Source of the DNA: Hamiltosporidium tvaerminnensis FI-OER-3-3
Lineage: Eukaryota; Fungi; Microsporidia
Length of the DNA: 64,000 nt
NCBI GenBank assembly: GCA_022605425.2
Contig: JAKIMF020000005.1
Location: 744,001-808,000 of the forward strand
Direction: 5' to 3'
The position numbers and the translations under genes are program-made. This document shows positions 581-54,784 of the stretch, piece after piece. Within the stretch, counting starts at the first letter, position 1, and each line of letters opens with the position of its first letter. The notes under the pieces were generated by a model that was given only the letters and a program-made list of their open reading frames with translations, was not told where the DNA came from and made no database searches.

Positions 581-1477
581 ATGGAAACCGTTTTTGTAAA
601 TTTAAAAGATATAAACGGAGATATTAACATAAAATACACTGGGATTTATGATGAAAAAATATCAAAAATAATGTTTTTGTTTTGGCAAATACAAGAACAG
701 AATGAAATATTCGTTGCTGGTATTGTTTTTGAAATGAAAGAAAAAAACATTGTATATATTTCTATATTAGATAGTATAGGAGAATTTGAACCAAGAAATA
801 TGCAAAAAGGATTTATCAATGGTACTATCCTGGCTCTTTTAAAATATTTGTCACCTACTTTTTTAGAAGTGTTTAGTCAACCAAAAAAGGAAATAATTTT
901 CGGTAAAAGTTCAAAAAATACTAAAAAAGGATTTTTAAATTCTCACAAGCTTTTTAAGTATTGGAAAAATATTTTTAGTAAATATATTTGTTGTGAAAAT
1001 AAGAAAGAATATAAACTTTATATTCATAACAATACCGATGAATCCAATGGTATTCCATACCATAGAAATACTAAATTAAATGATATCTATTTGTTTGATG
1101 ATGATCCAAAACAAAAATTGATAAATAATTTAGTAGAAAATGTAGGTATTTACAATTTTTTTAGTATTTTGCTTTTTAGATCTGATTTCTCTAATGGTTC
1201 ACTTCTTTTTAATGTATGTCCGTGTAAAAAACACAATTCAAATATAAATTTAGAAGAATTTAATTTATTTGATATAAAAGAAATATTAGAAACGCTAAGA
1301 GGTTTGGATTTCTCTGATTATCAAAATTCGTTAAAATCCACAATTTTTTTCTTAAAAAAGTACCAATTAAAATCTTTTCTATTTAAAACTTCTAAATCTA
1401 AACTATCAGAAAATATAATTGAAACACCAATAGAAGAACAAAGTTTTGTCAAAATAAAAACAAAATCAAAAAAATAA
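581..1477 (+). CDS. RTT109: Histone H3K56 acetyltransferase Rtt109-like, copy 1
   Basis: Motifs YISILDSxG, FSQPKKEIIFGKSSKNTKKGFLNSHKLFKYW (cf. Rtt109 FxRxxxQYLFPxSxxNxxKHxLxxxxLxxWW) and FDDDPK (cf. FPDDPK). First ATG is at 581; the track start at 527 is TTG. Confidence 0.8.
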   Translation: METVFVNLKDINGDINIKYTGIYDEKISKIMFLFWQIQEQNEIFVAGIVFEMKEKNIVYISILDSIGEFEPRNMQKGFINGTILALLKYLSPTFLEVFSQPKKEIIFGKSSKNTKKGFLNSHKLFKYWKNIFSKYICCENKKEYKLYIHNNTDESNGIPYHRNTKLNDIYLFDDDPKQKLINNLVENVGIYNFFSILLFRSDFSNGSLLFNVCPCKKHNSNINLEEFNLFDIKEILETLRGLDFSDYQNSLKSTIFFLKKYQLKSFLFKTSKSKLSENIIETPIEEQSFVKIKTKSKK

Positions 1478-1794
1478 AATTATTATTTCTAAAATGCGTT
1501 TAAAGCTTTGTATTTGTTTGTAGAAAATCCTTTTTTTAGAATTCTAAATAAACTTTTTTATTTTTTAGATTAACTCGTATAAAGAGTGTATTTGTTGAAG
1601 AAAAACTTTTGCATTTCGGAAAATAAATTTATACTTTGAGAGGTACAGAAGGGAGGGAATAAGTAGTAAATATTCAATGATAATGGATAGGTTGTTAAAA
1701 AGGAGGTAAAATTAAAGAAAATTACTATAACCCGAATCAATCAATATTAAATCAAATTTAGAAAATAAATATTTTGAAAATTTTTATTGTTTTT

Positions 1795-4263: not shown

Positions 4264-4530
4264 ATATGTAAATAAGTATTTTTATGATATAATATTGTTA
4301 TAATCATTCTAAAATTATGTATTGATTTCCTTGTACAAGTGCAATATCAGCGAGGAAAAAAATGTGTTGATTAAAAACTAAATCACCCAAGTCTTAAATT
4401 TTATAAGAAACATCGATCTAAAATTTAAAGTCTAATCTCATAAAAAAATTGACTTGAAGTATTTATAATAAAACAATCTGCAATTATTTACCCCGAAATA
4501 TGATGTCATTTATTTAGAATATTATTTTAT

Positions 4531-5468
4531 CATTTATATAATTCAGTAATCTCTCGACGACGACTCACCTCGAAATGTTTAATTAGTTAAAAGAATATAA
4601 GACACCAATAAGAGTGCTCCAATTAAGATATGTTTCTTTATATTTGTTCATAGATCTTACAGAACCAATAATAGTGAGCATAAGTGAACATAAAACAATG
4701 AAAAAATTTTTATTTGTTGAAAAGAAATATTTGAAATAAAATTCGTAAATTTTCTTCTAAATTGTATTATTTATAAGAATAACATAATAAATTTGTTCTT
4801 TGAATTTTTCTAAAGTTTTCATTTTTAGAAAGATTTAAACCAATTTGTTCTGATTTCTTTTCTATGAATTTACAGTTAGTTAAAAAATTGTATGATAAGA
4901 TTGCTGCTTTCCATCATTCTTCTGTGCAATTTATGTATATTCTCAAAAATAATTGCATAAAACAAATATTAATTGAATATTAGCTCCGTGGAACTTTATA
5001 CTTCATTAAATTAAAGGAATATTAGTAAAATTATTAAGAATTTATACAATAAATAAATAAACAAATAGCATATAGTTAAAGAACACAGTTTTTTCAGACA
5101 AGTAAAACACTTTACAAGAATACATGTCCTCACAGAAAAAGGTCAGAATTAATAAAAATAGGGGGAATGTGAACAGACTAAATATTTAAGCCGAGCTCAA
5201 GTTCTAAAAAATCTAAAGAAATATAAAATAGTAAGAGAAATATTATGGTTAAAAAAGCCCAAATTTTATTTAGAATTTGCTCAAAAGCAGGTAATAATTT
5301 TGTAATAAAAGATAAAAAAATATGCGAGAAACAGGCTAGGTGAGAGTATAAAATTTTTATTTAAATTATTGAGGAATTATATCTCAGATAAGTAAGGTAA
5401 GATTATTTTCAGCATTTTTTTCTTATGAATGTTAAATAAAGTTCGTTTTTATGTGCTTAATGTCTAGT
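4531..5468 (+). repeat. ~0.9-kb non-coding repeat; other copies at ~39240-40180 (-) and ~45648-46597 (+)
   Basis: Shared blocks include acgactcacctcgaaatgtttaatt, ctccgtggaactttatactt, acaggctaggtgagagtataa and aaataaagttcgttt. Confidence 0.9.
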
Positions 5469-6671
5469 TATAAATAATTCATGAAATCATTGACTCATAG
5501 TATAAAATGATGACCAAATAAATTCGTTAAAGAGGTAAAATAAACCAAATAAAGGCAAGAGAGAAGGATAACTTGGTATTCAATGACTATGAGCATGAAT
5601 AAATTTAGTATTTATAAGAAAAAACATTATTTTCTAATTATAAATGCTTGAGGGAAAATAATTAGAATTAAAACCTTCTGTGTGAAATGATCAAGTGAAA
5701 TTTATGAGAAAATTTTTGTTTAATTTTTTATAAGCTGAAAAGCTCACTAAAATTTCAGTTTCTTCATTGAGTTTTTTACAAGAAAGGGAGCTATAAAATG
5801 ATTAAAATTTCTAATAATTTAGTTTGTATTCTTATTAAACTAAATTGTAAACTAAGGTCAGACTTTTAGGTGATTCCCATAAAAAGAATTGGAATTAAAC
5901 CTTGCTCGCTCGAAAAAGGCTATACCTTCGAAGAGAAAAAAAATATGTTTTTTAAAAAGCCGGAATATTAAGTAGAAGGTTATAAGTATTGATATGAGAG
6001 GGCAACATATAGATGGACACCATTTAGGTTGCTGTGATATATTTTTCAGGATGTTATTTCGCTTGAAAATTGCAGACTAAGTGAGATTGCCTTTGGTGTG
6101 TTTAATGAAGGTTTTTAGTTGCGATTAATCTCTTGGCAAGATATATAACACTATGTAGCTACCCCATTCATTAAATGAGCTCCGTATACTTTTTAGGGGA
6201 AATACTTCCGGATGTAAGTATCTAAAAGATTCTTATATAGTGTTTTAGATGAAATATATATACGATTTCGAATTGCGTTACCACCATATAAAAGCTGTGA
6301 AATATGCTATTTTATATTGAAGATGCGAAATTTTTTCATTTCATCTCAAAACGGACCGAATTAGAATATAAAAAAAGGTGACAATGCTGACCTCAAATAT
6401 TTTTGATCTAGGATAAAATATAAGTCGAGAATGACATTAAATCTTACGATGAATCAAATATTTTTTCTCTTAATATTCTTTTTATATGTGTTTTTACGTT
6501 TATTGATTGCTATTTTTTTACTTATTTAATTTGTCATTAACTGTATAACTAATCATTAAATTCTAAAAGAAAAATATATTGTTAATAATAAATACAAGTC
6601 TTATCTCTCGGAGGCAGATTTTTATTAAAAATATCGTATTATAAGATTTTCCTTCGATACTGTTAATAATA

Positions 6672-8391
6672 CTCCCTCTGTCCGGAAATATGGTATACAT
6701 TTGCGAAAAAAATAAAATAAAATAAAAAATGTACAGGATAAGTTTATTATATTACCTTTATTTCGAAAATATAATAAATATTAATGTAAATATTAAATAA
6801 AATTTAAAAAAATATATAATAAAATTAATAAGTTCACTCGAAATTTGATTTAGCTTTAACGTATGCTTCTTTGGAACATACATATTTTTCTAGCAGTCGA
6901 CCTTCGCGACGAAGTTTTCCTTTACTTAAATGAGGTATTTTATAGCAATTTCCACCATCTGTTAGCATAATTGACTCCATACATGCTTGCAATGTTGTAA
7001 AAACGTTATCGAGAGTATTCGCTTTTAATTTATGAAATGCATCTTGAACACAATTTATTAATTCGTCAATTGTGTGTGGCGAAGCTTGATGTTGCAGCGA
7101 TTGTATGGAGTTGAAAAAACCTAAATCAAGAACATTTAAATCGAGGCTATTTGCCGGTTGCACCTTAAATTTAATATTCCGGTCATCAGCAGAACCAAGA
7201 GCGACAATATCTGTATCATTATCAGAAAAATGGGGTTTTGCATTGTTTTGTTGTACGTAAATTGTTTTCTTTTTGTATGCGGGCGGAAATTTAGATTTAA
7301 TTGCGGGAATTACATTATCAATGATCATGTTTTTGCAATGTACTGCTGTAACAGATTCCACATTTTTTTTATCATTGTTCCTTTAGCTTATTCTTAGAAT
7401 TTTTTTGAGCTGGTTCTTGATAAACAAATGGCCATATTCCAATTTTCCCATCAAAATAAAGCTTTCGATGTGCATCATAGCGTAGTCGAGATACTGCAGC
7501 CATGAACATTATTTTCGTAATAGATCGCTTACTTTTGCAGTTTCTCTCCTGTTTTTCTTCGTTTAACATTTAGTAATAAGAGCGCTTAACTTTAGTTAGA
7601 TAAAACCACTTTTCATCAATGTGAACGTAGTCGTACAAATCATCAAAAAGCAAATCTCAATTATTAACAAGATATACTTTAGACAAGCAAAATTTCAATC
7701 TGTCCATTTTATTTTTATCTGTTAAAGTTGGTTTAACTTTAGAAGATATTCTCTTCATATACTTTCCCGACTTGAATATATCAAACAAAGTTTATTTTGG
7801 AATATCAATTGCAAAGTAAAGACTTGTGAGCGTTCCTCGACGATTTAATGGTGTTTTCTTATTTGCGCTAAATTGTTCGAATATTCTTTAGGTTTTTTTC
7901 CGCATCTTTTTTTCTTTTTTAAAGAAACATCGGCACATATCTTGCCCTTTCTGTATTGAGTTTGTGCTGCATGCCAAATTCTGTTTACAGTTAGCCGGAA
8001 AACTTGAAAGGCAGAAGAAATTTCGTTGTTGGCACCGTATTTTAACTTATTCTCCTTCATCTGCTGTAATAATTTTTCTAAAATACCTTGACGTTGTTCT
8101 TTAGTTAATTGTTTATATTTTGAATCTCTTTTTTCTGAATTTAACAAATTTCCTTTCACATTTTCCATATTCGTCTTGCAGCGGTATTAATTTTTTTTAC
8201 CTTAAGAAACACTGATGTTTGAGCGGTAACTTTTTAACTAAGAATGATATTACTAAAGTTAAATATTTTAGGTTATATTGTCATGAATATTTACTATGAC
8301 AATTTCATGACGGTTGCCTATTTATTTTTTATATTCACGATAATCTATGGTTTTTTTTTGAAATGTATAACATATTTCCGGACATAGGGAG
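6672..8391 (-). mobile_element. Tc1/mariner DD39D (plant mariner/Stowaway-type TIR) element, defective, copy 1
   Basis: TIRs CTCCCT(C/A)TGTCCGGAAATATG with TA TSD at both ends. Transposase fragments VHIDEKWFYL, KIMFMAAV, DGKIGIWPF, QQ(N)NAKPH, QPANS(L)DLNVLDLGFF; 39 residues lie between the 2nd and 3rd catalytic positions. Carries stops and frameshifts. Confidence 0.95.
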
Positions 8392-9247
8392 TATAATTTA
8401 TTGGAAATTATTTCTTTATCTTAGAAGACCGAGGTTAGTAAATATTAAGATTTGATACTCTAAATTATATGGTGTCTAAATATTGAATAATTCAAAGGTG
8501 ATAATTGTATTAAAGAACGATGGTGATAGATAGTTACAAAATAAACATCCAGATAAAAATGATATAAAAGCATATGTCAAAAATAAAAGATAAAATATAA
8601 AATATTAACCATAAGCTAGAAAAATTGTATAAAGAGGTTTTTAAACACTAACAGAAGGAAAATCAAGAAATAGTTTTTTTTGGTTCGAATAAAATTTAAA
8701 TTTCTATTGAGTCAAGGATATAGATAATTGTGCCACTATTTTAAGAAATCAGATTAAATTAATAAATTTGCTTTTAATTTAGAATTATTATTGTTTTTTT
8801 AAGATTATATTTACTTGAAAGCTTACTAATGATGTTTTTTGCCATGAATTTGATTAAGATCTATAAAATGCCGATTCAAATAATTAAATTACGTTTTTAC
8901 ATATTACTAGATTTCTTTTTGATAAAAAGACTATTCTCGATTTTACACGTTTTTTAAAAAAAGAATTTTAGACAATATTCATCAATTGGAATTTTTTTTA
9001 TATTCTGTTTTTAAATAATTAACTTTGTTTGAACCAAAAATTTTGTTTTTACAGAAATAAAAGAACATAAAAAAATATTCGATTTTTCGAGGTGATCTAG
9101 AGCGATCTTCATTTATAATTATATAATCTTAGATAGATTGATTTCCAGAAACGTATAATTATATAATTATAAAAGAAAATAATATTCGATATCTTAAAGA
9201 TCTTAAAAATGTATAAAGATTCGATTTTTGTTTTAAATTTATATTTG

Positions 9248-11577
9248 ATGTTTATGAAATTTGATATATTAATTCTGTTTATTTTACTCAGATGTAGAAC
9301 TATAGATGTGGTTTTTAGATTTAATATCTCCGGTTCTGATGATCAGAGAACTCCTTTTCAATATGAAAATAAATTTGAGAAAAGAAAATACAATATTTCA
9401 GGAAATAATATTAAATCAAAGAGAAAAAAAGAATTCAAAGACATGAGAAACTTAAAAAGAATGCGACATTCAGACGAAATCGTTTTTGGAAATATAGAAA
9501 ATTATAAATTGAAATTTAATATATTATCAAGTTATTGTTCCGATTCCGAGAATAAGATATTAATAGATGTTTACAAATTCGGTTTTACAGATTTCATTAT
9601 TTTTAAAAATTTAATGGATTCTTTATATCGTCCTTTTAAAAAAATTACACTCCATGATTTTTTTCTAATATTAAAGATCAGCGAATATTTTGGAGTTGAA
9701 GATATTAATCAGTGTGAAGAAATTATATATTGTTTGATTTATAATTTGTTACCCGCTCTTGAATGTCATAAAACAATATTAGAAGAGCAAATTTTGAAAA
9801 TTAAAAAGCGATTAATTCTGCCAATAAAATTCACTGAGATAATCTTGAATCAAATTAACAAAATATTTTTTTTCCAAAATCTAGATGATGAATATTTTAT
9901 AGAAGCTAAAAAATTAAGATTATTTACGAAAGAATTTAATATTGCATATTTAGATAATAATACATTATTTCTAACACACCCTGATATAAATTCATCTTTG
10001 TACGAAGAATATTGCATAAATTCAATAGTTTTCTCAAATATTCATTATATTTTATTAAAAATGTTAAATGTAGAAAAATACGGGTTTTTCACAAAAAATG
10101 TAAATTACCAATTGATAAATTCTTCCGTCAAATCATTTATAGATAATATTTATGAGCTATTATTTTATTACTTTCATATTACTGGTGAGAAATTTAAATT
10201 ACTAAATGAAAATTCAGTATTTAAAGCACTTAAACATATATATTTAATAAACTCAACCATAGAAACAGAAAATAGATCTTTTTTCAAAAAAATATATATT
10301 TAGAAAAAATAAACTTTATATTTGATTATGAAGAAGAAGAAGAATTAGAAACTGAATTTATAGAAAATAAAGATATATGCGCTATTTTAGAGATCAAAAA
10401 CGTTATTTTATATTCAAATTTCGAAGAGAAACTAATGAAACTAATATATTTAGACGGCTTAAAGTCTGATTTGAATAGTAAATATTTCATTCTAAAGGAA
10501 AACACTGTTTATGATGATGAAGAATATTTCATTTTTAAAGACGATATATCCTACATTCATATATATTTTAATGAAAAAATTACGGTTCAAATATTAGTGC
10601 TTATTGCATCTATGAGAAATCTTCAAACAATAAAAATTGATTGTCACTCATTTACGAATCATCAAGAGTTATCAACGGATTTGTTCTATTGTAAAGAAAT
10701 AAACGAATTAAAAATAATCAGATATGACATCAATATTGATTTGATTTGCAAAATACTATGTTTACCAACTCTTAGAGTATTAACTATAAATTTTTGTAAA
10801 CTTAAACCGATTGATACGGATAATTTACTTCCAGAAAATTATACGATTTTAGATTTTTTATTTATGGAAACGATTTTGCCGATTTAAATATACTTTCTCG
10901 AATTTTATATTCTTTGAAAAAAGTTGAAAGTTTATTTTTACATGGAGATGGTTTTATAGGATTTTGTATTTAAAGAATATAAATAATTTTTTTTCGACTA
11001 GATTGTTTAAAAAACTTTCAATTATTTCTGAATACCCCGAAGAGCCTTTTAAAGAATTTGAGTTTCTCGTAAATAATACTGAACAATTGTATTTTGGTCG
11101 TAATTATCCAGAAGGTAGTCTCAAAAATATTTTTTTAAAGGCAAACCTGAAAAAGCTGAAAATTCTTAGTATTCATGATTTTCATATTGGAAGAAGAGAT
11201 ACAAATGCATTTAAAGACCTTGAAGTTCTTATATCACTAAATATTTTAGGTTGTAATTTTCTGGGTAGACGTTAGCTGGTCTGTTCTCCGATGAAAAAGA
11301 ATATATGATAGAAAACTTGATATTAAGAGGAGCTTATTTAGTAAAAAAGGATATATATTTCCTTTCCAAATTAAGAATGCTAAAGAGTTTAACTTTGTCA
11401 GCTTGCGAATATGAAAATGAAGCACATACATATTTAAAAATAATATACTTCAAAAGATTGAATGTTATTTTTATAGATTGCTTTCTATCAGATACTCCAC
11501 AGGATACAATGGATTATTTTATAGAAGAATTTTCACCAAATATATTGTCTCTTAAAGTTGAAACATCTCTGGAATAA
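9248..11577 (+). pseudogene. Frameshifted signal-peptide/BTB-like/LRR-like gene (~775 aa if joined), copy 1
   Basis: Four collinear ORFs (9209-10303, 10435-10887, 10964-11275, 11305-11577) joined by 1-nt deletions. Hydrophobic N-terminus and LxxLxL repeats. Some breaks may be homopolymer sequencing errors. Confidence 0.75.
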
Positions 11578-11880
11578 ATGTATAAAACAATGATGTTTAT
11601 ATACGCTTATTAAATTCGAAGATTTTCTATACGACAACAAAATTTTGCTATTGAAAATCGTTTCTTCAAAGACTTTTTTAAAAACTTATATGTAAAGTTT
11701 ATATTTCTACAAGAAAAAATCTAAAAATTTAGAATTTAGACCAAAAATCATTTTACTTCGTTTTATGATATTAATCGATTATTATTTTCTTGACCCTTGT
11801 AAGTTTTATTGTTTATTAATACAGTCTATGTGGGATTCATAGCTTCACCATTTAAATTGGTGTAACGCTTTGTATGTAGT

Positions 11881-12025
11881 TGTGAAGGGAGGATAACCAC
11901 ATTAGAATTTTCTGCTTGGCAAAATGTGTAGAATTGTTTCAAAATAATAGTTTTCATTTTAGTGGAGTATAAACCACACTGGATCTATAGGCAAATCTTA
12001 TTTAATTTCGAGTTATAACAGATTA
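11881..12025 (+). repeat. Partial copy (core) of dispersed repeat family R1
   Basis: gataaccacatt..ttctgcttggca..tgtgt..attttagtgg..taaaccacact is also seen at ~17005, ~25255-25360(-), ~32650-32795(-), ~45241-45385(-) and ~55545-55600(-). Confidence 0.75.
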
Positions 12026-13301
12026 AAAGAAACAAATGCAAAACTCTTTTTGTTCATCATAGACACTAGAGGTAAAAGTGAATGTAATATATAATTAACT
12101 ACGTAAGTTTTTTATGTGGGTTTTTTCTATTTCGATTTATTTTAAATGGTTATGTTTTTAGTTCGTTAGAAAAAAAACTTTTTTTTACCGAAAGCCTTAT
12201 GTCGACTATTAAACCTAGACCTGCGAAATCAAAAGTTTCTACAGAAAAACTAAATTATTGATTTTTAACCTATTTATATAATTAATTGTAATTTACTAAA
12301 GAATGAAATAAAGAACACAGATTCATCATCCGAAATCATTTATAAAATAAAGATATATTTGATTAGTAAACTGTATATTAACAATGTATTTTTTTAAACT
12401 ATACTTGTAAGTCATAGATTGAAAAAAGTAAAATCATTTGAGAATAAATTCTGAAGGGAATATATTAAAACAATTTTGGCAAGAAATTAAGATTTTTTAG
12501 GAGAGATATAGGAAATAGAACAGATTCAACTCAATATTAAAAGATCTAAAATTATAGAATAAAGCATAGGGTTTATTCAATAAGCACAAATTTTAATATT
12601 TACATGGAAATCTAAGTTAAAACCAGTAAAAATGCTATTATATAACCAGTTGAAACTGTCAATTAAATATTTAGTTTTGCAAAAAAAAGATTCAAATGAT
12701 ATAAAATCTTAAAATTTTAAATCATCTGCTATACTCTAAATAATAGTTCTGAAATTTTTGTTTCGAATACATATAAATCCTGGCATTATCATTTTATAAA
12801 TAAACTAGGCTTTTTGGGTTAAAAAAATCTATTGAATCCACGTATCTATGAAGTAAATGAAGAGCTACCAACCAATGAAATAATCAAAAATTTAAATTTA
12901 ATTTTAAATAATAAAATCCAACAAGGAATAAATTTCATTTGGATGTCTTTTTTTTAAGTGAAATCACATTTCAAATTTTTCTAGCAAAGGAGAAAAGGAG
13001 TTAAATTAAATAAATTAAAGAGAAAAGACTCGTCATTAAAAAAATAATCATGAAATTTACGTAAGTATTATTTTGAGATTAAATTTAATATTTATTTATA
13101 CAATGTTTCTTTAAAATTTAAGCTTTAATTGTCTGTACAAACTATTTAAAACAATAATAACAAAATTAAAGAATAAATCAATTTTCTGATTACTGGTTAA
13201 TAATTTAATAAATGTAAAATTTGAAGATAATTTTTTTTGTAATGGAAAAATAAACAACAATTTTAAACATTTTGCAGATTTCAATAAATACAAATGGCAC
13301 A

Positions 13302-14342
13302 CTATTCTGATTTCTTGTAAAATAAAATATCGGGTATATTTCTATATCCAAGATTCTCAATTGACTCTATATTCAGTTCTTTTACTAAAACGTCATTTAA
13401 CTCATAATAACGGTTCCCAAATATTGCAACAGTGTAATAATGCAAATTTTTTATATGAAATATACATGCATTAAATGTATATTCTTGATTTTGAACAAAT
13501 ATTTTTTCATTTATTAGAACATCACTATTAGAACAAGGCCAATGTGAATTTTTAATTATTAGATTTTTTGGTAAGCTTGTGATCTCGGTAGTTATTTTTG
13601 CAGATCCAAAAATATTGCTTGACATACTGCAAATACAATCTATATTCTTAACATTTAAACAATTATCTATAGATTTCTGTATAGAAAATTCTAAGTAAAG
13701 TAAAAAGGTGTACTCATTTATGGTATTAATTGTTTTTTCGTGGCAAAAAGAGCAGCGAATAGTATTTTTACGTTTGAAAAAATATAGATCACCCAAGAAA
13801 AACTCTTGTTGAAATTGTTTAAAATCTATGATTTTTTTGATATTAAATCTTCTATTATCATTAATTTCATTTAAAATCTGAGTAAAAATTATAGACAAAC
13901 ACGCGTAGGCGTCTTCGAAAAAACCAAACTTAAAACTTTTGTAATCAACATTTAAATCTAAAATCTGTTTCAAATAATTGGATGTACTAATAATTTGGCC
14001 TTTTAACATATGCTAAAATATTTCTTTTAAAAGGATAATACATTTTTGGTTTTGATTGTGTTTATAAGAAAATATTTTATTCATAAAATCTGTTTGAACG
14101 TATAATGCTTGTATTATAGAATTAAAATAACAAACATATTTGTCGTTTTCTAGTCCGACAATATTTCTCTCAGAAAGCAATAAAGTATTTTCTGAAACTT
14201 TTGTTCTATTTTTTTCCGCACTCACTTTCTCAATATCTTTTCTTTTAGATGAAATAATAAAAATTATCCATATAACCAAAACAAATATTATAGCAATTAA
14301 ACTGATTAAAAGTTTTTTTACTTTCATGTGTAGTTGATTCAT
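13302..14342 (-). pseudogene. USP (peptidase C19) deubiquitinase with N-terminal TM, interrupted by in-frame TAG at 14013-14015
   Basis: Same length and frame as the intact copy at 30299-31339. Codons TAG CAT replace TCA CTC between the Cys box and the His box. Confidence 0.88.
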
Positions 14343-14959
14343 TTTTCTTATAAATTCCAAGATAACAGATAATATTTTATTTACTTAAAATAGAAAACTT
14401 ATTAAAATAAACTTTTTACAATCATTTTCTGATAGATAATGAATCTAAAATGGTATAAAGTGAAAGTTGTTGTCAAATATATGCACGAGTCCGAGCTTTT
14501 TCCGTTCGCGGTTTTGCTTAAATTTTAATCCTTTGATACATTTTACAAAATTTTTTTAACTCTCAACCGAATTTATGTTATAATTAAGAATTAATATATC
14601 TAGTTTTAAAAAAAGATATAGAAAACGTTTTTCGATAAATTCGCGGTTAGATCATTTCAGGGAAACTGTAATGTATGGGATTGAAACCATTTTTTTTATG
14701 ATTTAATTACAATTTTTATAATTTATGTATATTCTTGGTTTTATACTCGTTATACCATGAATTTTTTTTAATATGTTTAGTGGAATAGCCAATACGTATT
14801 TTACATCTCTAGATTTCAATTGATTTGGACAATTTATAAATCAGCAACCTATCAAACATGTTTTAACAGACGATTAACAGATGTTACTACATGCTCAATG
14901 GTATATGGCTCAACAAAACCATTGGCTTTATTTACAATCATATTCCACCCATCACGATT

Positions 14960-16999: not shown

Positions 17000-17640
17000 T
17001 TTGGGGGAAAGGAGATAACGACAAAAAAACTTTCTAATTGGCAATGAATAGGGGAAGTTATAGTTATAATTATCTTTGGAATTTTAAGTGGATATAAGTA
17101 ACACAATATTTTTGGTTCTTGCATGGGTGTTTGTATGAGAAGGAGAACGTCTACGAAATAGCAAAATCTTTTCTAAAAATTTATTCGAAGTTTTATATGT
17201 GACTAGATTGCAGAATGCAGCTGATCATATAGGTAATTGCCATGTAAAAGTATGTTAAACAACCCATACATACCGTAATTAGAAAACACGGGGTTGGAAT
17301 ATATAAAAATAAAACTATTAATCCGGGCAAGCTAAGTAGCAAGTTATACTGTTGGTATGACATTGACTGTCTAAGTAGATCCATGTAAGTATCAAGATAT
17401 GCCATAATTATAACTTTTTGGGTTTGTTGGTGGGGTTAGGTGTGTACGTTGCATAGTCTTGGATGAGCTAAGTATGGGATTTACATACTATCACACTTCC
17501 TGCAACGAAGAAAAACGAACACAAGGCAACTGCTTCGACTATTAATTAACATCTACAGACTTGGTAGGTGAAAGACTTTGGGAAGTAGCTATTGCAAGGT
17601 ATACTGATGGAGTTTTGGAGAGCAGGTAGATGTAGACATA
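17000..17640 (+). repeat. Full-length copy A of dispersed repeat family R1 (~650 bp)
   Basis: 17000-17400 matches the reverse complement of 24950-25360. 17400-17640 matches the reverse complement of 21600-21790 (ctccaa.actccatcag, gcagttgcc, caagactatgca). Confidence 0.85.
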
Positions 17641-17849
17641 AAACCGTTTTATGTCATAAAAATATGAATAACGCATGCCACCTTTTTTAAAAACATGGGA
17701 TATTTTACAATAAAAATTTCAAATGATTGCTTCAACTGAAATTTTATAAGATAATTTTCTTTAAATTTAATGTTTTAATTCAATAAAATTTTGGGTATAT
17801 ACATTTTATCTCTTAAATATTATTTTTTCCAATTTTTAACATCTTTAGT

Positions 17850-21200: not shown

Positions 21201-21599
21201 TTTTTCTGGGATATCAGCTGTATTGAGGTCTTCCATGATGTTGTCTGGTCTACACACAGATGAATCGGAATAAGAAAACGAAGGTAAGGTGTCTTACGGG
21301 CAGACTGAGGTACATATAAGTATTAATCGTTTGTAAAAGTACTGATATGAATGATATGTTGATCCGGAAGCCCTCGGATATTGAAAATACATTCAAATAC
21401 CCTACTTATATCTTTTCTAAACTAGTCGTCAAGTTTAATAGCCTTTTTTTCTGTTTTTATATTTTGCTGTCAAGTTTTTTCTTTCTACCTATTTTAAATT
21501 AAATATACGCCAATTTAAAATATCACATATTTTTATAAAACCGTGGCAATCGTTCAATTTGTTACTATCAAATTAACTCGGTTCTAGGGGGAACATAAA

Positions 21600-21790
21600 T
21601 AGCTGATACTCCAACACTCCATCAGAATCCCCTACTATAAGTATATCCCAAAACCTTTAATCTAAAAAATCATCAGAACCTAAAAAAGAGGCGAGGCAGT
21701 TGCCCAAAGTTCGTTAATGCTCTTTGCATAAAGTGTAATCTCAGAACGAAACACATCTGGGTTCAGGCAAGACTATGCAGCATCCCCTCT
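21600..21790 (-). repeat. R1 copy B, distal part (split by RTE insertion)
   Basis: Collinear with rc(17450-17640) and with 54785-54970. Confidence 0.8.
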
Positions 21791-24700
21791 TACTCTTATT
21801 ACTTAGTTACTAAATAGCATTATGGCTCATTAAGAGCCCTAGCTTCATGCACTATTGAATTCCATCTGTCGTAATCAACTGCCTCCCATTTTTATTCGTC
21901 TATATCAAAGCCACTGAGATCTTTTTGTATATTATGTAGCTATCTAGCCTTTGGGCGACTAGAGAGTCTTCGACCTTTGGGATTAAACATATATACTTTT
22001 GCAACTGTTCTGCCTTCTGGCATTCGTTCAAGATAGCCTAGAAAATGCAGTATGGTTTTGTTAACTTCGTATATTGTCCCTATATTTCGATTAAAGTCTT
22101 GGAGATCGATGTTGTTATGAATTTGCTACTCTCCTTGCTGATTTCATATTGGTCTTTATATTTTGCTTAGAAGCTTTCGGTCCCATGTGCTTAATTTTGC
22201 TTCATCACACTCTGCAGCATCTAAGTTTCGCAACCATGCATCACTATAGGTCTAAGAATTGTTTTATGTATTACTATCTTACTTCTCAAGCTTAAAAGTC
22301 GAAGTTTTAGAATTCCTATAAGCAAAAATATACATTGTTTCATGCTCTAATTCCCTTTTTTATTTCTACACTGTTGTCATTATCTTTTGTTAGAAGCATT
22401 CGTAGATTTTTAAATGAGGCTATACTCTCGAAGGGATATATTTGTCTACCTGAAAGAAAGGCTGAATATTTTCCTGCTTCCTCCTAGTCATCATGCATTT
22501 TTTTTAATTATATTAATACGAAGACCTGCTTTTCGTGTTTCATATTCGATCTTCGTGACATAGTCTCGAAGTTCATCCCCCTTTTTTTGCTATGATGTCA
22601 ATGTCATTAGCATAACCCAAAAAGTGATTTCTCTGTTGTTCAATATTCTTTCGAAGCATTTTCAACTTTTCTAATAGCTTTATGATCGTGATATCAAAAA
22701 GCATCTTCTTTGTCTTAGATCACGGCTCATTAGAAAATTTCTAGAAAATTTTCCTGCTCTACAATTCTAAACTTTGTCTTTTTTAAGGTCATTCAGATAA
22801 GGCTTACGATTTTCTCTGAAATCTGCATTTCTGATAATTTTCAGAAAAAAATTTCGATTAACCCTATAATATGCCTATTTATAGTTTATAAAAAGCTGAA
22901 TAGGCGGGTTATGCTCTTAGAATTTTTTTAAAAGACATTTTACGGTAAATATTTGGTAGATTGTTGGTCTTGGTTTTCTGAATCCTGCTTGGTATTTATC
23001 CAGTTTCTTTCTACATATAGTTCAAGAAGCTTTGCTATATCTTTGTACAGTATTTTATAAGTGACATTTAGGAAGATATTTCCCTGTAGTTAGAGCATAT
23101 GAATTTAGAGCACTTTTGTGAATTGGTACTATAAGTGTCTTATTCCAATTTTCTGGCATTTTTTCGTGTTTCCAAACTCTTAAGATTAGAGAGAATTTCT
23201 TTCAAATGCGCCTTCCCTCCATACTTTAATATCTCGGCGTTTATACGATCCCCACTTAATGGTTTTACACTTTTAAGGGATTAATAGCCGCTTTAATTTC
23301 AAAAAAATTAGGCTCTGGTATGTTAATATTGTTTGTATATTTTATGGGTAGTATTTGTTTTGTAAAATCTTGCTCCTTTTCATGTTGCAGCGTCTCATTT
23401 AAGCGTTTCTTGGAATAGCCTGCCGATTTTAAGACTTTTTTCAGATTTTTCATTAGCGTCTCAATTCATGTCTCTATTGCAACGTTTCTAGCCAGAAATA
23501 TCTTTCTTGCCCCTTGAATCTCTGCATAAATTTCTCGCGATAGTTTATTTAGAGATTTTTCATCCATTTGCCGTATCTTCTTTGTATGAATCTTATTTTT
23601 CCTTTCCTACATACGAGTAATGCTTTGGTCTTAGCACTTATAAAGATAAATCTGTTCTGGTGCATTGGTCTCTGTGACAATGTATTTCGTGCCTGGTTTC
23701 GCGTGTAATGCTATTTTGTATTCTTCATCAAACCAACTCTGTCTACCTTTGTGTTCTTTACTGCCGATTATTTCCTACGCCTCTATTCGTATTATATTCT
23801 TTAGTCTCTCCCATGTCTTTTCAATTCCTTCGTTATTCTTACTTCTGCCTGACTCTTCATATGAATTCATATTCTTTTGAATATTTTTACCAAATAGTTC
23901 TCTTACCTTTGGTCTTTTGGTTTTTTGCAGTTAAACTTCTTAGATTTAAGGTTTATTTACGAAGCCTATTCTTGATATTCTTTGCGGAATTTCATGATTA
24001 CAAGGGAATGATCTGTGCAGACATCTGCTCCTCTATATGCCTTACATATTGTACACTCTATGCATGTCTTCATATACCATTGGATAATCTATTTGATTGA
24101 CCGTATGATCATCCGGAAATTTTCACTTTGCCCCATGTATGTCTTTATGAGGAAAGCATGTACTAGAGATAATCATATTTTTACTAGTTGCAAAGTCAAT
24201 TGATCAAAACCCATTTTCGCTTCTGTCTCTATGTAAGCTATCTTTTCCAATAATTGAAGTATAGGCTCTTTCTTTTCCTATTTTTGAATTCAAGTCACCG
24301 AGTACTATCTAGATGTCATTATTTGAAGATTTATAATATGATTTTTCTAACAAGTCGTAAAAGCCGTCTTCCTCCATATAATTTGCCTCTTCAGTTATAG
24401 CATGCACATATAGTATGGCAAGTTAAAGGATTCTTCTTTCAGCCGTTTCGACAAATTCTTTCATTTATTCCTTTAAAATCCTTTCGGTATGGTCCAAATT
24501 GTTGTTTATAGCAAAAGCTGTGCCTAGGTATAGGTTGTCTCGTTTCCACTATATAATATTGTTTAGTCTTCAGTTGTGAGCGTATCTGTCCCTTTTCAGC
24601 GAATCTCTTGCAGTGCAAAAATGTCTATTTTATATTTCTTAACTTTTAGTGCCTATTTTTTTAAAGTCTCTGGTTTATTAAGTGTCCGTACATTACATGT

Positions 24701-24906
24701 CCCCAACTTTAATTCATTTTTTAAATTTTCCCTGTTTGTTTTTGTTTTTGTTTTTGTTGGTAATTTTTCTATTTTGTTTTGTCTTGTTATCGTCAAGTTT
24801 TGTAAATGTTTCATAACATGTGGTTTTTTTCCAAAGGTGGGTTGTTACCCCGACGCTCAAGCCTCCTACTTTCTCATCGGGGCTCAAGACCGGCCATGGC
24901 GGAGTT
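21791..24906 (-). mobile_element. Full-length decayed RTE-clade non-LTR retrotransposon (APE + RT)
   Basis: APE motifs LKLGTCNVRTL..KYKIDIFALQEIR, LGTAFA, VLGDLNSKIG. RT motifs PENWNKTLIVPIHK, YQAGFR, LGYANDIDI (YADD). C-terminal ILRPIVMHGCET, ERMPEGR..PKGRR. RTE-type 5'UTR motif TTGAGCGTCGGGGTAACAACCC, a degenerate (TAAG)n tail and a degenerate ~10-bp TSD. Confidence 0.93.
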
Positions 24907-24910
24907 AATT
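24857..24910 (-). ncRNA. Degenerate twister ribozyme (type P1) at the RTE 5' end
   Basis: Minus strand AAUU^AACUCCGCCAUGGCCGGUCUUGAGCCCCGAUGAGAAAGUAGGAGGCUU follows the twister pattern UAACUCCGCC..GCCGGUCCCAAGCCCGGAUAAA.GGAGGAGGG, with a few mismatches in P2/P4/T1. Confidence 0.8.
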
Positions 24911-25365
24911 CCACTTAGTTTACCTTTCCGAACCTCATATACCTTCAACTAAGATATATTTCAGCGACTTTGTGGGGTTCATCTTGGATTGCACTGCCAC
25001 ATCAATATTTTACCCATGCCAAATAGCTTTCGTGACTTTAGAAGAGTTTTATTTTTATATTTCCCTGGCGCTAAGTCTTCTAAACCGTGTGAGCATCATT
25101 AGGTTTCCATGCTTTTACATGGTAATTACCTACAATTTCAACTGGGTCTGCCATCTAGTTACGTAAAAAACCACAAATGAATTTGTAGAAAAAGTTTCGC
25201 TATTTCGATGACGTTCTCTTCTTCATACAAAAACCCATGGAACAACCAAAATGTAGTGTGGTTTTATTCCCACCAAAAATCCAAACAATGACCTCACACC
25301 AGTTTTCCACACTCATATCAAAGCAGAAAGTTTTTTACGTGGTTATCACCTCTTCACATTTGAAA
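24907..25365 (-). repeat. R1 copy B, proximal part
   Basis: The reverse complement matches 17000-17400; ctaagatatatttca is shared with 55010. Confidence 0.85.
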
Positions 25366-38036: not shown

Positions 38037-40444
38037 TATTATTCAACTTATCGAAGGAAAATCTTATAATACGATATTTTTAATAAAAATCTGTCTCTGA
38101 GAGCTAAGACTTGTATTTATTATTAACAATATATTTTTCTTTTAGAATTTAAAGATTATTTATACAGTTAAAAGACAAATTAAATAAGTAAAAAAATAGC
38201 AATCAATAAACGTAAAAACACATATAAAAAGAATATTAAGAGAAAAAATATTTGATTCATCGTAAGATTTAATATCATTCTCGACTAAAATTTTATCCTA
38301 GATCAAAAATATTTGAGGTCAGCATAGTCACTTTTTTTTATATTCTAATTCGGTTCATTTTGAGATGAAATGAAAAAAATTCAAATATTCAATACAAAAT
38401 AGCACATTTTATATTTTTTATATTATAGTAACGCAATTCGATATTGTATAGATATTTCATTTAAAACACAATATAAGAATCTTTTAGATACTTACATCCG
38501 GAAGTATTTCCCCTGAAAGGTATACGAAACCCATTTAATGAATGGGGTAGCTACATAGTGTTATATATCTTGCCAAGAGATTAATCGCAAGTAAAAACCT
38601 TCATTGAACACACCAAAGGCAATCTCACTTAGTCTGTAATTTTCAAGCGAAATAACATATAGAAAATACATATCGGTAACCTAAATAGAGTCCATCTATA
38701 TGTTTCCCACCCATATCAACACTTATAACCTGCTAGTTAATATTCCTAAATTTTTGAAAAAAATATTTTTTTTACTTTTCGAATGTGTAGCCTTTTTCGA
38801 GCGAGCAATCTTAATTCCAATTCTTTTTATGGAAATCACTATAAGTTCAGCCTTGGTTTACAATTTAGTTAAATAAGAATGCGAACTAAATTATTAGAAA
38901 TTTTAATCATTTTATAGCTCCCTTTCTTTTGGAAAACCAAATGAAGAAAGTGAAATTTTAGTGTGGTTTTCATCCTTTAAAAAATTATAACAAAAATATC
39001 ACAAAAATTTCACCTGATCATTTCACAAAGAAGGATTTAATTCTAGTTATCTTCCCTCAAGCATTTATAATTAGAAAATAATATTTTTTCTTATAAATAC
39101 TAAATTTATTTTTTTGATAGTTATTTAATACCAAGTTATCCTTATCTCTTGTCTTTATTTGGTTTATTTTACCTCTTTTACGAATTTATTTGGTCATCAT
39201 TTTATACTTGAGTCAATGATTTCATAAATTATTTATAACTAGACATTAAGCACATAGAAACGAACTTTCTTTTACATTCATAAGAAAAAAAGGCCGAAAA
39301 TAATCTGAACTTACTTATCTGAGCCATAATTCCACAATAATTTCAACTAAATCTTATACTCTCACCTAGTCTGTTTCTCGCATATTTTTTTTATCTTTTA
39401 TTACAAAATTATTACCTGCTTTTGAGCAATTTCTAAATAAAATTTAGGCTTTTTTAACCTGAATATTTCTCTTACTATTTTATATTTCTTTCGATTTTTC
39501 AGAGCTTGAGCTCGGCTTAAATATTTAGTCTGTTTACATTCCCTCTATTTTTATTCATCCTGTCCTTTTTTGTGCGGACATGTATTCTTGTAAAGTGTTT
39601 TACTTGTCTGAAAAAACTGTGTTTTTTAACTATATGCTATTTGTTAATTTATTTATTGTATAAATTCTTAATAATTTTACTAATATTCCTTTAATTTAAT
39701 GAAGTATGAAGTTCCATGAAGCTAATATTCAATTAATATTTGTTTTATGCAATTATTTTCGAGAATATACATAAACTGCACAGAAGAATGATGGAAAGCA
39801 TCAATCTTATCATACAATTTTTTACCTAACTGTAAATTCTTAGAAAATAAATCTCAACAAATTAATTTAAATTTTTTAAACAGAAAACTCTGAGGAAAAT
39901 GAAAAAAAAAATATATTCTTTTGTTTTTCCTTTCATATTAATACAGTCTAGAAAGGATTTTAACAATTTTTATTTCGAATATTTTTTTTCAACAAATAGA
40001 AATTTTTTAATTGTTTTATGTTCACTTCTACTCACTATTATTGGTTGCATAAGATTTATGAACAAATATAAAGAAACATATCTTAATTGGAGCACTCTTA
40101 TTGGTGCCTTATATTCTTTTACCTAATTAAACATTTCGAGGTGAGTCGTCGTCGAGAGATTACTGAATTATATAAATGATAAAATAGTATTCTAAATAAA
40201 TGACATCATATTTCGGGGTAAATAATTGCAGATTGTTTTATTATAAATACTTCAAGTCAATTGTTTTATGAGATTAGACTTTAAATTTTAGATCGATGTT
40301 TCTTATAAAATTTAAGACTTGGGTGATTTAGTTTTTAATCAACACATTTTTTTCCTCGCTGATATGCACTTGTACAAGGAAATCAATACATAATTTTAGA
40401 ATGATTATAACAATATTATATCTTAAAAATACTTATTTACATAT

Positions 40445-42913
40445 TTATAGTATTTTAACTATAAGTTTTATTATTTCATTGATATTCTGCTCATCAACAT
40501 AATTTTCATTTAAAACCTTCTTGACTTTCATAATAATATCATTTTTTCTAGAAATTTTATTAGTTGGAAATATTTCATATTCTTTTATTTCTGTGACATT
40601 AGAATTTAAATAAATATTTTTAAGAAATTCAATTGAAGAATCTGCCACTTCATTATTTTTAATAGCTTGTAGTGATTTGACAATACCAAATCCTTTTTGC
40701 CCAATATTATAATCACTTCCTAATAAGTAACATAGTTTTATTAAATCTAATTGATTTAAATTTAATTTTGATTGAATATTTTGTAATGAATAACATGTCG
40801 GTACTTTGTTCTTCTTAAAAAAGTTTCTATAAACTTTATTGGCACCGTAAATAAGTACATCGTTATCTTCTGTAATAACACCATCTACAATGTTGTTTAT
40901 GTTGAGATATGCACACTGAGAATCTGCTTCCATGGGAGAAATAATGTAGGGAAGATTAAATGCTTTTAAAATGCTTTGTACTGCAATAGCAAAATTAAGT
41001 TCGTGAGGAATCAGATTATTAGAGATTTTTATATCAGTAATGCCATTTTCTGGAATGACTTGTGTTTGATTTAATATTTCAGTGTTCTGTAATGAATCGA
41101 TGTTTATGCTTGTTTTAGAAATGAGATTATTTGGATCGTTTCCATCTTTTGGTTCATATGTTATATCTTCTATATGTCTCATTGGTGGAATGTGAGGTGT
41201 GCAAGACTCTGAATATGATTTTAGATCTGATGATTCGCTCTTAGCTTCTTCTGAGTATTTCGTCGCAAGATCAATAGTTTCTGTATTTTCTTCTTCAAAT
41301 TTAGAATCTGTTGATTTATCACCCAAATCATCAATATATTTTACTTTATTATCTTCAAATTTAGAATCTGTTGATTTACCACCCAAATCATCAATATATT
41401 TGACTCCTTTGTCCTCAGATTTTAGATTTATGAATTTTTCGTTCGAAATATTTGATTCTTTGCATTCAAATGTTATATTGTTATTTGAATCATTAATTTT
41501 TATGAGTTCAGGTCTTTTTTCGGTTTGAAGATTGCTTTCCAAATTCAAATCAAAAGAGTAAATATTTTTGCTCGTTTTTAAATTCTCATTTACTGAAATA
41601 TCAGAACCTAAATTTCCTACCATCTTCTCGTTTTCGGATAAAATAGAAATCTTACCTGAAATATCTTTTAATGACGATTCGTTACATTCTTTTTTCTGTT
41701 TAAAATATTCAGATTTATTATTTTCGGATTCGATGATTTTTAAGTTATTGAAGCTATCCTCGTTACTGACATCTATTGCTAGATTAACTTCTTGGGAATC
41801 AAAAGAATTATGTTGTACTTCTTTGAGCCATTCATCCAAACTTTCTTCTTTTTCATCAGTTTCTACTAAATTTATACTTTTAATTTCTTTTTTATTTTCT
41901 TCAAAAATTTCATCAATAAAAATATTTTTACCATTTTTTTCAAATTCAAAATAAGTTTTACAATCACTTAAAACTCTTTTTTTTGCTGCACAACCCAAAT
42001 TAGAAATATGTGTTGTCACTTTGTTTCTTTTCTTTACATTTTCCATCTGTGAAATACTAAATTTTTCCATATCAGAATTGTCCTGGTAAGAAGACATTCC
42101 TCGCATTTCTCGCAAATATACCAAATATTTTAATTTTTTCTTCTTTGATAAATTTTCATATTCTTTTGTATCCAAATAATCTGTTAAATTTCCAAAAAAT
42201 ATTTCTTTGTCTCTAATATTTTTCAAATGTTCTTCTTCTGAAATATTTGGACAATATATATTTTTACCTTCATCATTGTATTTATTTACTTTACATTTTT
42301 CCTTTTTAAAAATCTTTTTCTTTTCTTCTCTAAAGTCTAAATTATTTTTAGAAACATTTTTTGTATTTATAATAGACTTTTCAGTATCTGTAAAATGATT
42401 ATCTGTAACACAATCATAGGTATTATATTCATTATTATCAAAAAATATATTATCTTCATATTCACTCATACTAGATATATCATCTCCCCAATCATATTCA
42501 TGATTTTCTAATCTATCAATACAATTTTTATAAATTTTACTGAATAAATTATCCTTTTCAACACTTGCATGGACACATTCGTTATATTTTTTACAACAAA
42601 TTTTACAAATCTTTTTTTCAATAAATTTACGTGCCAAGTCTGATAAATCAACATAATTACGTAAATTTCTACGTTCTTCACATACTTTCCGTTTCAAATC
42701 TGGAATATTTCCATCAAATACAAATACCGGTTTAATTTTATAATAAATTAATTTTAATATTCGTTTTGTAATAAAATATAGAGATTGATTGTGTGGCAAT
42801 GAAGAATACTGATACATCCATATGCTTATATCTATTGCTAGTTTTTTATCATCAAAATTTATTTCTTCTTCTGCACAATTTTTTAAAATTTTCCATAAAT
42901 TTTTTACACCCAT
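40445..42913 (-). CDS. RAD2: XPG/Rad2 endonuclease, copy 2 (intact)
   Basis: Same length and motifs as copy 1. Confidence 0.93.
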   Translation of the reverse strand: MGVKNLWKILKNCAEEEINFDDKKLAIDISIWMYQYSSLPHNQSLYFITKRILKLIYYKIKPVFVFDGNIPDLKRKVCEERRNLRNYVDLSDLARKFIEKKICKICCKKYNECVHASVEKDNLFSKIYKNCIDRLENHEYDWGDDISSMSEYEDNIFFDNNEYNTYDCVTDNHFTDTEKSIINTKNVSKNNLDFREEKKKIFKKEKCKVNKYNDEGKNIYCPNISEEEHLKNIRDKEIFFGNLTDYLDTKEYENLSKKKKLKYLVYLREMRGMSSYQDNSDMEKFSISQMENVKKRNKVTTHISNLGCAAKKRVLSDCKTYFEFEKNGKNIFIDEIFEENKKEIKSINLVETDEKEESLDEWLKEVQHNSFDSQEVNLAIDVSNEDSFNNLKIIESENNKSEYFKQKKECNESSLKDISGKISILSENEKMVGNLGSDISVNENLKTSKNIYSFDLNLESNLQTEKRPELIKINDSNNNITFECKESNISNEKFINLKSEDKGVKYIDDLGGKSTDSKFEDNKVKYIDDLGDKSTDSKFEEENTETIDLATKYSEEAKSESSDLKSYSESCTPHIPPMRHIEDITYEPKDGNDPNNLISKTSINIDSLQNTEILNQTQVIPENGITDIKISNNLIPHELNFAIAVQSILKAFNLPYIISPMEADSQCAYLNINNIVDGVITEDNDVLIYGANKVYRNFFKKNKVPTCYSLQNIQSKLNLNQLDLIKLCYLLGSDYNIGQKGFGIVKSLQAIKNNEVADSSIEFLKNIYLNSNVTEIKEYEIFPTNKISRKNDIIMKVKKVLNENYVDEQNINEIIKLIVKIL

Positions 42914-43229
42914 AAAAACAATAAAAATTTTCAAAATATTTATTTTCTAAATTTGATTTAATATTGATTGATTCGTTTTATAGTAATTTTCTTTAATTTT
43001 ACCTCCTTTTTAACAACTTATCCATTATCATTGAATATTTACTACTTATTCCCTCCCTTCTGTACCTCTCAAAGTATAAATTTATTTTCCGAAATGCAAA
43101 AGTTTTCTTCAACAAATACACTCTTTACACGAGTTAATCTAAAAAATAAAAAAGTTTATTTAGAATTCTAAAAAAAGGATTTTCTACAAACAAATACAAA
43201 GCTTTAAACGCATTTTAGAAATAATAATT

Positions 43230-44126
43230 TTATTTTTTTGATTTTGTTTTTATTTTGACAAAACTTTGTTCTTCTATTGGTGTTTCAATTATATTTTCTG
43301 ATAGTTTAGATTTAGAAGTTTTAAATAGAAAAGATTTTAATTGGTACTTTTTTAAGAAAAAAATTGTGGATTTTAACGAATTTTGATAATCAGAGAAATC
43401 CAAACCTCTTAGCGTTTCTAATATTTCTTTTATATCAAATAAATTAAATTCTTCTAAATTTAGATTTGAATTGTGTTTTTTACACGGACATACATTAAAA
43501 AGAAGTGAACCATTAGAGAAATCAGATCTAAAAAGCAAAATACTAAAAAAATTATAAATATCTACATTTTCTTCTAAATTATTTATCAATTTTTGTTTTG
43601 GATCATCATCAAATAAATAGATACCATTTAATTTAGTATTTCTATGGTATGGAATACCATTGGATTCATCGGTATTGTTATGAATATAAAGTTTATATTC
43701 TTTCTTATTTTCACAACAAATATATTTACTAAAAATATTTTTCCAATACTTAAAAAGCTTGTGAGAATTTAAAAATCCTTTTTTAGTATTTTTTGAACTT
43801 TTACCGAAAATTATTTCCTTTTTTGGTTGACTAAACACTTCTAAAAAAGTAGGTGACAAATATTTTAAAAGAGCCAGGATAGTACCATTGATAAATCCTT
43901 TTTGCATATTTCTTGGTTTAAATTCTCCTGTACTATCTAATATAGAAATATATACAATGTTTTTTTCTTTCATTTCAAAAACAATACCAGCAACGAATAT
44001 TTCATTCTGTTCTTGTATTTGCCAAAACAAAAACATTATTTTTGATATTTTTTCATCATAAATCCCAGTGTATTTTATTTTAATATCTCCGTTTATATCT
44101 TTTAAATTTACAAAAACGGTTTCCAT
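43230..44126 (-). CDS. RTT109: Rtt109-like acetyltransferase, copy 2 (intact)
   Basis: Same length and motifs as copy 1. Confidence 0.8.
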   Translation of the reverse strand: METVFVNLKDINGDIKIKYTGIYDEKISKIMFLFWQIQEQNEIFVAGIVFEMKEKNIVYISILDSTGEFKPRNMQKGFINGTILALLKYLSPTFLEVFSQPKKEIIFGKSSKNTKKGFLNSHKLFKYWKNIFSKYICCENKKEYKLYIHNNTDESNGIPYHRNTKLNGIYLFDDDPKQKLINNLEENVDIYNFFSILLFRSDFSNGSLLFNVCPCKKHNSNLNLEEFNLFDIKEILETLRGLDFSDYQNSLKSTIFFLKKYQLKSFLFKTSKSKLSENIIETPIEEQSFVKIKTKSKK

Positions 44127-45240
44127 AAATTGGATGGAGTATTCAAAAAAATTAAGAAGGTAAAAATTTTGAGAAACCAAGTGACAAATTTATAAAAATA
44201 TTTTAGAAAATATGTTTTTTTTAAAGATAAAAGCAATTATTTTGTTTTTATTTCTGAACGAAAGAATCAAAAAAATATAAAAATCTGAAAACAACGATCA
44301 CCTAAACAAAAATTGGGTCGAAGTTAAGAAATGCAAAATTTACTCAAAATACACATATTTTTAAAAAAGAGTAAAGTTCATCTTAATTTATATGATATTA
44401 AGACACAAGAATTCCCGATCATCGACCCAACACAATAGTTTAGAAATATAAAATCATAGTTTTTCGCAATATACTCAGGCATATAAACCTTCAAATATAA
44501 CAATAAATTCATAAACAGAATTATACTTGTAAAGTTTAAAAACCGTCAGAAATGCTTTATTACCTTTTAATTGATAAATACAAATGAATTATTTTTTTTT
44601 TTGCAGCAAAAAAACGTTTTATGGAATCATTCGAAAATTTTAACAAAGTTCATGGGTATTCTGATCATAAATTTTTTACACGAATAGATTTGTATCTTAA
44701 ATGTTTAAAAACAGTAAAATAAACTAATAAGAACGAAATAAATGCGTTATTTCTTCAGGAAGTTAGCAAAAGTTCTATTATTCATCTTTTTGTGTTTTAC
44801 ATAATTCTGAGTGGAAATCATTAAAATGAGATCCAAATAAACCTTACCAGAAATAGGTTAAAAAATAACTGAAATATTCAAAAAAGAGTTCTTATATTAT
44901 ATTGATTGGATATTTTAAGTTGAAGAAAATACATCTAACTCTTTGAATGACAAACAGTTCCAAAGCCATGCATTTTGTAAAAAATATCTCATTGTGTGAA
45001 ACTTCTTAAAGAAAAATTTAGATACCTTTCAAAGGAAAAAAAGTAAGTAAAATTTCTTTATACATGTCTATAAAAATTTCTATGGAAAGCAGATAACAAC
45101 AAAAACTTAAATATACACTACCGAAACTTCTAGGCATGCAATTTTTTTTGGTCAAAAAGCTAAGCTTTCCTACTTTTAGCAGTCCTGTTTTACCTTTCGG
45201 TCTCGAGGAGGACAAATGAAAGTTTCCACTGGTTCATTTA

Positions 45241-54620: not shown

Positions 54621-54784
54621 TTGGGTTGTTTTTTAATAATTAATTAAATATATATGAAAATTAATTAATTTCAAGTTTTGAAATTATAATATCAATGTAA
54701 CTATTTAGTTAAAAATCATGTTTTTAACAAACAACTGGCATTGTTCGCATTGTATGTATGATATTAAAGCGGTTCGGGTTTAAA

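Follow-up and report, generated by a model that had tools for sequence, protein, structure and literature searches.

A dead RTE-type LINE of Hamiltosporidium tvaerminnensis begins with a decayed twister ribozyme, a probable relic of ribozyme-driven 5' processing

A dead LINE inside a host repeat

The window analysed here is a 64,000-nucleotide stretch of contig JAKIMF020000005.1 from Hamiltosporidium tvaerminnensis FI-OER-3-3, a microsporidian parasite of water fleas; two proteins encoded in it fall into clusters named H. tvaerminnensis and H. magnivora. The minus strand of the window carries a 3.1-kb RTE-type LINE that is full-length and dead. The single APE-RT ORF (21820..24739, minus strand) is of full length, is interrupted by many stops and frameshifts, and ends with a stop at 21820. 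In a profile of intact relatives with 978 positions its remnants span positions 3-974 (best E-value 1.5e-92), and 22 stops fall inside one 526-residue match; the intact relatives carry PF03372 and PF00078 and lack a CCHC motif. The element closes with a degenerate short-repeat 3' tail of TAAG/AGT-like units (21797..21816, minus strand), and related copies terminate in (AGT)n or (GTAA)n. At its 5' end an RTE-type 5'UTR hairpin motif (24824..24860, minus strand), resembling one that precedes the ORF in those related RTEs that were examined, lies directly after the ribozyme sequence described below and provides, with its first four bases, the 3' strand of ribozyme helix P1. The earlier note had placed the RTE 5'UTR motif and then APE downstream of the ribozyme, and this order was confirmed, with the motif at 24860-24824 and the APE-RT remnants running from 24739 to 21820. 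The single ORF with an N-terminal APE, an RT and a short C-terminus without zinc finger, the short-repeat tail and the variable target site duplication (TSD) are all hallmarks of the RTE clade, to which we take the element to belong on this anatomy and on known RTE motifs.

At least 40 places in the genome match the subfamily of this LINE, most of them 5'-truncated; four copies besides this one extend to query positions 2-5, which is where the ribozyme cut site lies. The insertion in the window is common to several isolates and to a second organism of the same sequencing study (~98% identity), which we infer to be H. magnivora. The LINE stands in the spacer between the arms of an inverted duplication of ~14 kb (window positions 107-14401 and 30240-44600, 90-99% identity) whose arms encode an Rtt109-like acetyltransferase, an XPG-family nuclease and a ubiquitin hydrolase.

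The element interrupts a host repeat, R1, of ~730 nt, which is present at high copy number (at least 1054 candidate copies in the genome). The left part of the interrupted copy lies at 21513..21796 (plus strand, 72-77% identity to intact copies) and the right part at 24907..25355 (plus strand, ~80% identity). The earlier reading of a full-length RTE LINE interrupting the repeat stands, with the addition that the element is dead. Further R1 copies occur in the window at 17010-17707 (minus strand) and at about 54700-55060; the closest copies of the repeat are 89-96% alike and apparently have flanking duplications of their own, and no terminal inverted repeat was found in R1.

In the earlier note the second of these, called copy C, had served as the uninterrupted reference. 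The 40-nt spacing read there is correct (GCAGCATC at 54962 and CTAAG at 55010), but copy C is a poor proxy for the empty site and its use had missed the TSD: the gap sequence is much diverged, and BLAST gave no link to the right flank. Intact R1 copies from across the genome were used instead, and the empty site was taken as the consensus of 19 of them (L035-L053), ~80% identical to the window's copy. Against this consensus a 15-bp TSD was recognized, with its 3' copy at 21782..21796 (plus strand, 13/15 matches to the consensus) and its 5' copy at 24907..24921 (plus strand, starting at 24907 or 24908; 11/15 matches ungapped, 12/15 with one gap). The 5' copy supplies the U at position -1 of the ribozyme and the 5' strand of P1. 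From this duplication it follows that the first base of the element is 24906, if the U comes from the target, or 24907. The claim that the ribozyme marks the exact 5' end of the LINE thus holds in that the junction falls at the U^A step, but its precision is limited to one base by the TSD; host sequence, said to resume at ~24907-24909, restarts at 24907 or 24908 relative to the empty-site consensus.

Twister heads in the window and across the genome

The ribozyme sequence occupies 24857..24907 (minus strand) and was recognized as a decayed P1-type twister without P3 by reading its core pairs one by one and by covariance models. The minus-strand sequence quoted in the earlier note is present, with U^A at 24907/24906. 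Position -1 is U 24907, which is probably host-derived, position +1 is A 24906, and the general base is G 24865; P2 is formed by 24904-24901 and 24869-24866 and P4 by 24893-24890 and 24881-24878. Among 14 core pairs, nine are Watson-Crick, two are G-U and three are mismatched, one each in P2 (C-U), P4 (C-C) and T1 (C-C), and the previously reported mismatches in these three elements are therefore real. T1 is weakened by its C-C mismatch and two G-U pairs, while T2 is unbroken, as is the C-G pair that closes the 3-nt loop. The N^AA of L1 and the opposite-strand general base are kept (A 24906, A 24905, G 24865 and A 24864); one conserved A of L4 has changed to G at 24885, and L2 is 3 nt longer than in the consensus, as it is in the sister copy L062. 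P2 and P4 are fully paired in the family consensus and incompletely paired in the window copy. P1, for which at least two pairs are expected, has one pair in the window copy and two when the empty-site sequence is substituted, its 5' strand being host-derived.

A scan of the whole window at Rfam gathering thresholds gave no match. The twister-P1 model (RF03160) on the minus strand, the check proposed at the outset, was the best Rfam match in the 700 bases around the site, yet its 16 bits (E 2.3), where the cut-off is 67.2 bits, are insufficient alone for this copy. A covariance model trained on 31 other genomic copies, with the subfamily of the window left out, scored the window copy at 25.9 bits (E 6.7e-5 for 74 kb searched, E-values of this model being rough), the best match in the window, with the runner-up at 13.4 bits. 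The minimum-energy fold predicted for the window copy was not a twister (z -1.6), but the program used is unable to form pseudoknots, and thermodynamic folding is uninformative for a double pseudoknot. Judged by its sequence, the window copy is a decayed descendant of a P1 twister, and is filed as such rather than as a working member of the class because its P2 and P4 pairing is broken and it misses the Rfam cut-off. The three mismatches and the loss of a conserved A indicate that it is probably no longer catalytic.

Across the genome, RF03160 gave 31 matches, the best at 43.9 bits (E 1.7e-7) and none above the cut-off, so that the earlier note's proviso of no significant covariance-model match for the family did not come about. 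The model trained on other subfamilies found 57 places. These ~57 twister heads belong to three decayed RTE groups, whose members are 64-77% alike within a group, and to a 186-nt non-autonomous derivative. The majority consensus of the family is a canonical twister core, the same as in the twisters of Schistosoma mansoni (PMC8501958), and the consensus of the three LINE groups and the short element keeps all core pairs and both catalytic bases, with P3 varying between groups or missing. Over 31 copies, a Watson-Crick pair is the commonest at 17 of the 18 named positions, both pseudoknots included; the sole exception is one P4 pair, where U-G (9 copies) exceeds C-G (8 copies). In register, 76% of cells pair, compared with 40-46% when the partners are slid.

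Covariation among these 31 genomic copies was not above that in shuffles, as is expected of neutrally decayed copies. No open frame longer than 184 codons was found in the 13 LINE copies read; three further 5'-complete members of the window's subfamily lie at C2:534041, C12:909398 and C6:495497, outside this set. With neither covariation nor an intact ORF, all examined copies look neutrally decayed. Many other RT copies in the genome lie in long open frames of about 850-940 and 1250 codons (e.g., C13:59462, C4:7827 and C14:1453201); none is among the twister matches, and they probably represent other, younger retroelement families.

It might still be asked whether the window copy, or some of the others, continues to self-cleave and cuts host read-through transcripts, a reading which is compatible with the ancestral role argued below. 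The window copy retains A+1, A+2, the general-base G, T2 and the C-G pair, its insertion is common to several isolates and a second organism, and twister variants tolerate a weak P1 and any base at -1 (PMC8501958); in copies L006, L013 and L054, 12-13 of 14 core pairs survive together with every single conserved base. Set against this are the mismatches in P2, P4 and T1, the two G-U pairs of T1 and the change of an L4 A to G in the window copy, together with a neutral rate of decay, and we regard present-day activity as decidedly improbable.

Insertion junctions and a short derivative

The position of the 5' ends relative to the cut site was examined over 30 independent copies. A TSD, in which the 5' flank is repeated behind the tail, was present in 21 of them, compared with 106 of 870 mismatched pairs (12%; Fisher p 1e-12), and in those 21 copies the duplication stops within one base of the cut site. 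The register of each TSD was picked from positions -12 to -4 only. By position, the fraction matching was 0.67 at -3, 0.62 at -2, 0.76 at -1 and 0.71 at the first A, falling to 0.19 and then 0.10 over the two bases that follow (null 0.2-0.4). Pairwise identity of the independent copies rose from ~0.30 upstream of the cut site to 0.93 at the first A. Copies extending well upstream, which the earlier note had named as evidence against its reading, were thus not seen, and no sequence is shared upstream of the cut site.

The first A occurs in 29 of 30 copies, even where the target has no A, and is therefore encoded by the element. It is common to target and element in 15 of 21 copies (null 31%, p 2e-4), an excess which suggests a one-base microhomology at the 5' junction during second-strand joining. 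The base at -1 varied (T in 19 copies, A in 6, G in 3 and C in 2), consistent with the finding that cleavage is allowed by any base at -1 (PMC8501958). Selection for U at this position was considered on account of the 19 T in 30 and rejected, most copies having been found with a model that favours U; of seven short elements found by DNA search, four have T. Pairing of P1 with the flank was not above background (1.83 vs 1.91 of 4 pairs), and no selection for P1 pairing at insertion sites was found.

The short element, ~186 nt long, is built from the 5'-terminal 140 nt of one LINE group joined to a LINE 3' end and an (AGT)n tail, and is flanked by a TSD. At least 21 independent copies were found, ~17% diverged from their consensus (L005, L006, L009, L012-L018, L020, L021, L029, L068-L073, L076 and L077; e.g., C1:1291260-1291444, minus strand). 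The twister differs from the consensus at 17.7% of positions and the remainder at 16.4%, which indicates that the ribozyme has decayed neutrally with the rest of the element. Bov-A, RTESINE1/2 and WALLSI3 are known examples of bipartite non-autonomous RTEs (PMC5786205), and like them the 186-nt element is the 5' part of a LINE fused to the LINE 3' end; unlike them, its head is a twister. No description of a twister-headed bipartite non-autonomous RTE was found in the literature searched.

These junctions bear on a second reading, in which Hamiltosporidium received the twister together with an RTE acquired horizontally, the ribozyme no longer worked in this host, and an internal promoter that starts at that A fixed the 5' ends. 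Internal promoters can set LINE 5' ends, the closest named relatives are arthropod RTEs, and selection on the fold is seen in no copy. However, the insertions begin at the scissile bond, a match that a transcription start would not be expected to show, and the consensus retains every core pair and both catalytic bases despite a P3 that varies or is missing. A promoter origin of the 5' ends is therefore very unlikely. A GC-rich RTE 5'UTR that resembles a twister by chance would accommodate the window copy's Rfam score of 16 bits (E 2.3), but this reading is refuted at the family level by paralogous heads reaching E 1.7e-7 with the Rfam model, by a consensus equal to the known core and by the independent model at E 6.7e-5, and its probability is close to nil.

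Relatives, ancestral mechanism and significance

The nearest named proteins belong to arthropod elements, with ~40-45% identity in the APE domain. An intact related RTE from another organism (L084, a Logan contig) has an intact twister at its 5' end (positions 16-97, 58.6 bits, E 7e-11), which also lies under the 67.2-bit Rfam cut-off, and an intact RTE-type mite element of the Tyrophagus cluster (L093, 417-540) has a twister head with a very long P3. The GC-rich heads of aphid, psyllid, Rhodnius and termite-gut-type relatives (L087-L089, L091, L092, L094 and L097) gave no match to twister or any other Rfam ribozyme; they may resemble HDV-like ribozymes. A metagenome scan around the closest intact protein (P0178) found only termite-gut-type loci, without a twister match. 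In a quick tree with no named Repbase RTE references, the Hamiltosporidium copies were nested among arthropod and other APE-RT elements, and twister-headed elements appeared in two places, which hints at head exchange; sampling in this tree is thin, and its X-filled Hamiltosporidium rows were tiled on P0178 and are biased toward it. A more far-reaching scenario, in which twister-headed RTEs came from an animal host and spawned the twister-headed 186-nt element, some of the ~57 copies still cleave, and heads were swapped repeatedly between twisters and other ribozymes, is a conjecture that we consider unlikely as a whole.

Taken together, the data make it very probable that the window holds what is left of a twister which once supplied the 5' end of an RTE-clade LINE by the following ancestral mechanism. 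An active ancestor would have been read through from a host promoter, and its twister would have cut the transcript at N^A. The freed RNA, starting 5'-OH-AAC, would be translated to the APE-RT protein, and target-primed reverse transcription would copy the RNA into a new site. Full-length insertions would then start at the cut site, as read from the junctions, with the new TSD giving the -1 base and the 5' strand of P1. The structure of the 186-nt element is that of an internally deleted derivative that kept the head and the LINE tail, and it presumably moved in trans. The elements would afterwards have died and decayed neutrally. Target-primed reverse transcription and twister chemistry are both established biology. 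The mechanism is assigned to the ancestral elements because all examined copies are decayed. Within that limit, the proposal of a ribozyme-driven mechanism in a microsporidian host was upheld in the twister identity, the RTE-type element and the 5' junction at the cut site.

The closest known system is Perere-3 of S. mansoni, whose twister variants cleave in vitro and in reporters/in vivo and whose TSDs adjoin the cut site (PMC8501958), in line with the earlier note's statement that twisters process the 5' ends of RTE-clade elements in Schistosoma. Like Perere-3, the elements described here are of the RTE clade with a single APE-RT ORF, a P1-type twister at the 5' end and a short-repeat 3' tail, and the TSD next to the cut site supplies the P1 5' strand, with any base at -1. 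They differ from Perere-3 in their microsporidian host, in that the examined copies are all dead, in the window subfamily lacking P3 and having an L2 3 nt longer, and in the presence of a bipartite non-autonomous derivative. Truncated but competent twisters conserved at the 5' end of RTE-superfamily elements have been stated as an unpublished result (PMC7761336), with the same ribozyme class, position and proposed role; the passage concerned names no taxa and does not mention microsporidia. The topology and conserved bases are those of Rfam RF03160, although, with a cut-off of 67.2 bits, the window copy scores 16 bits and the genome maximum is 43.9. HDV-like ribozymes head RTE, R2, R1, R4, Ingi and LOA LINEs (PMC5786205, PMC6765202), and there too self-cleavage sets the 5' end of the element, by a different ribozyme fold.

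Earlier records of twisters come from yeasts, plants, insects and worms, and H. tvaerminnensis was known to have LINEs (PMC4202319). A search with most subscription journals outside its range found no paper on self-cleaving ribozymes, twisters included, in microsporidia. The mechanism is thus known already, and the microsporidian host lineage appears to be new. As the elements look dead, a present-day role in the parasite is unlikely. For the family, the finding carries twister-driven 5' processing of RTE LINEs beyond Schistosoma into a microsporidian and provides a junction-level test over several families, in which autonomous and non-autonomous insertions start within one base of the scissile bond. 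The suggested one-base microhomology bears on second-strand joining, a stage of LINE insertion that is poorly understood.
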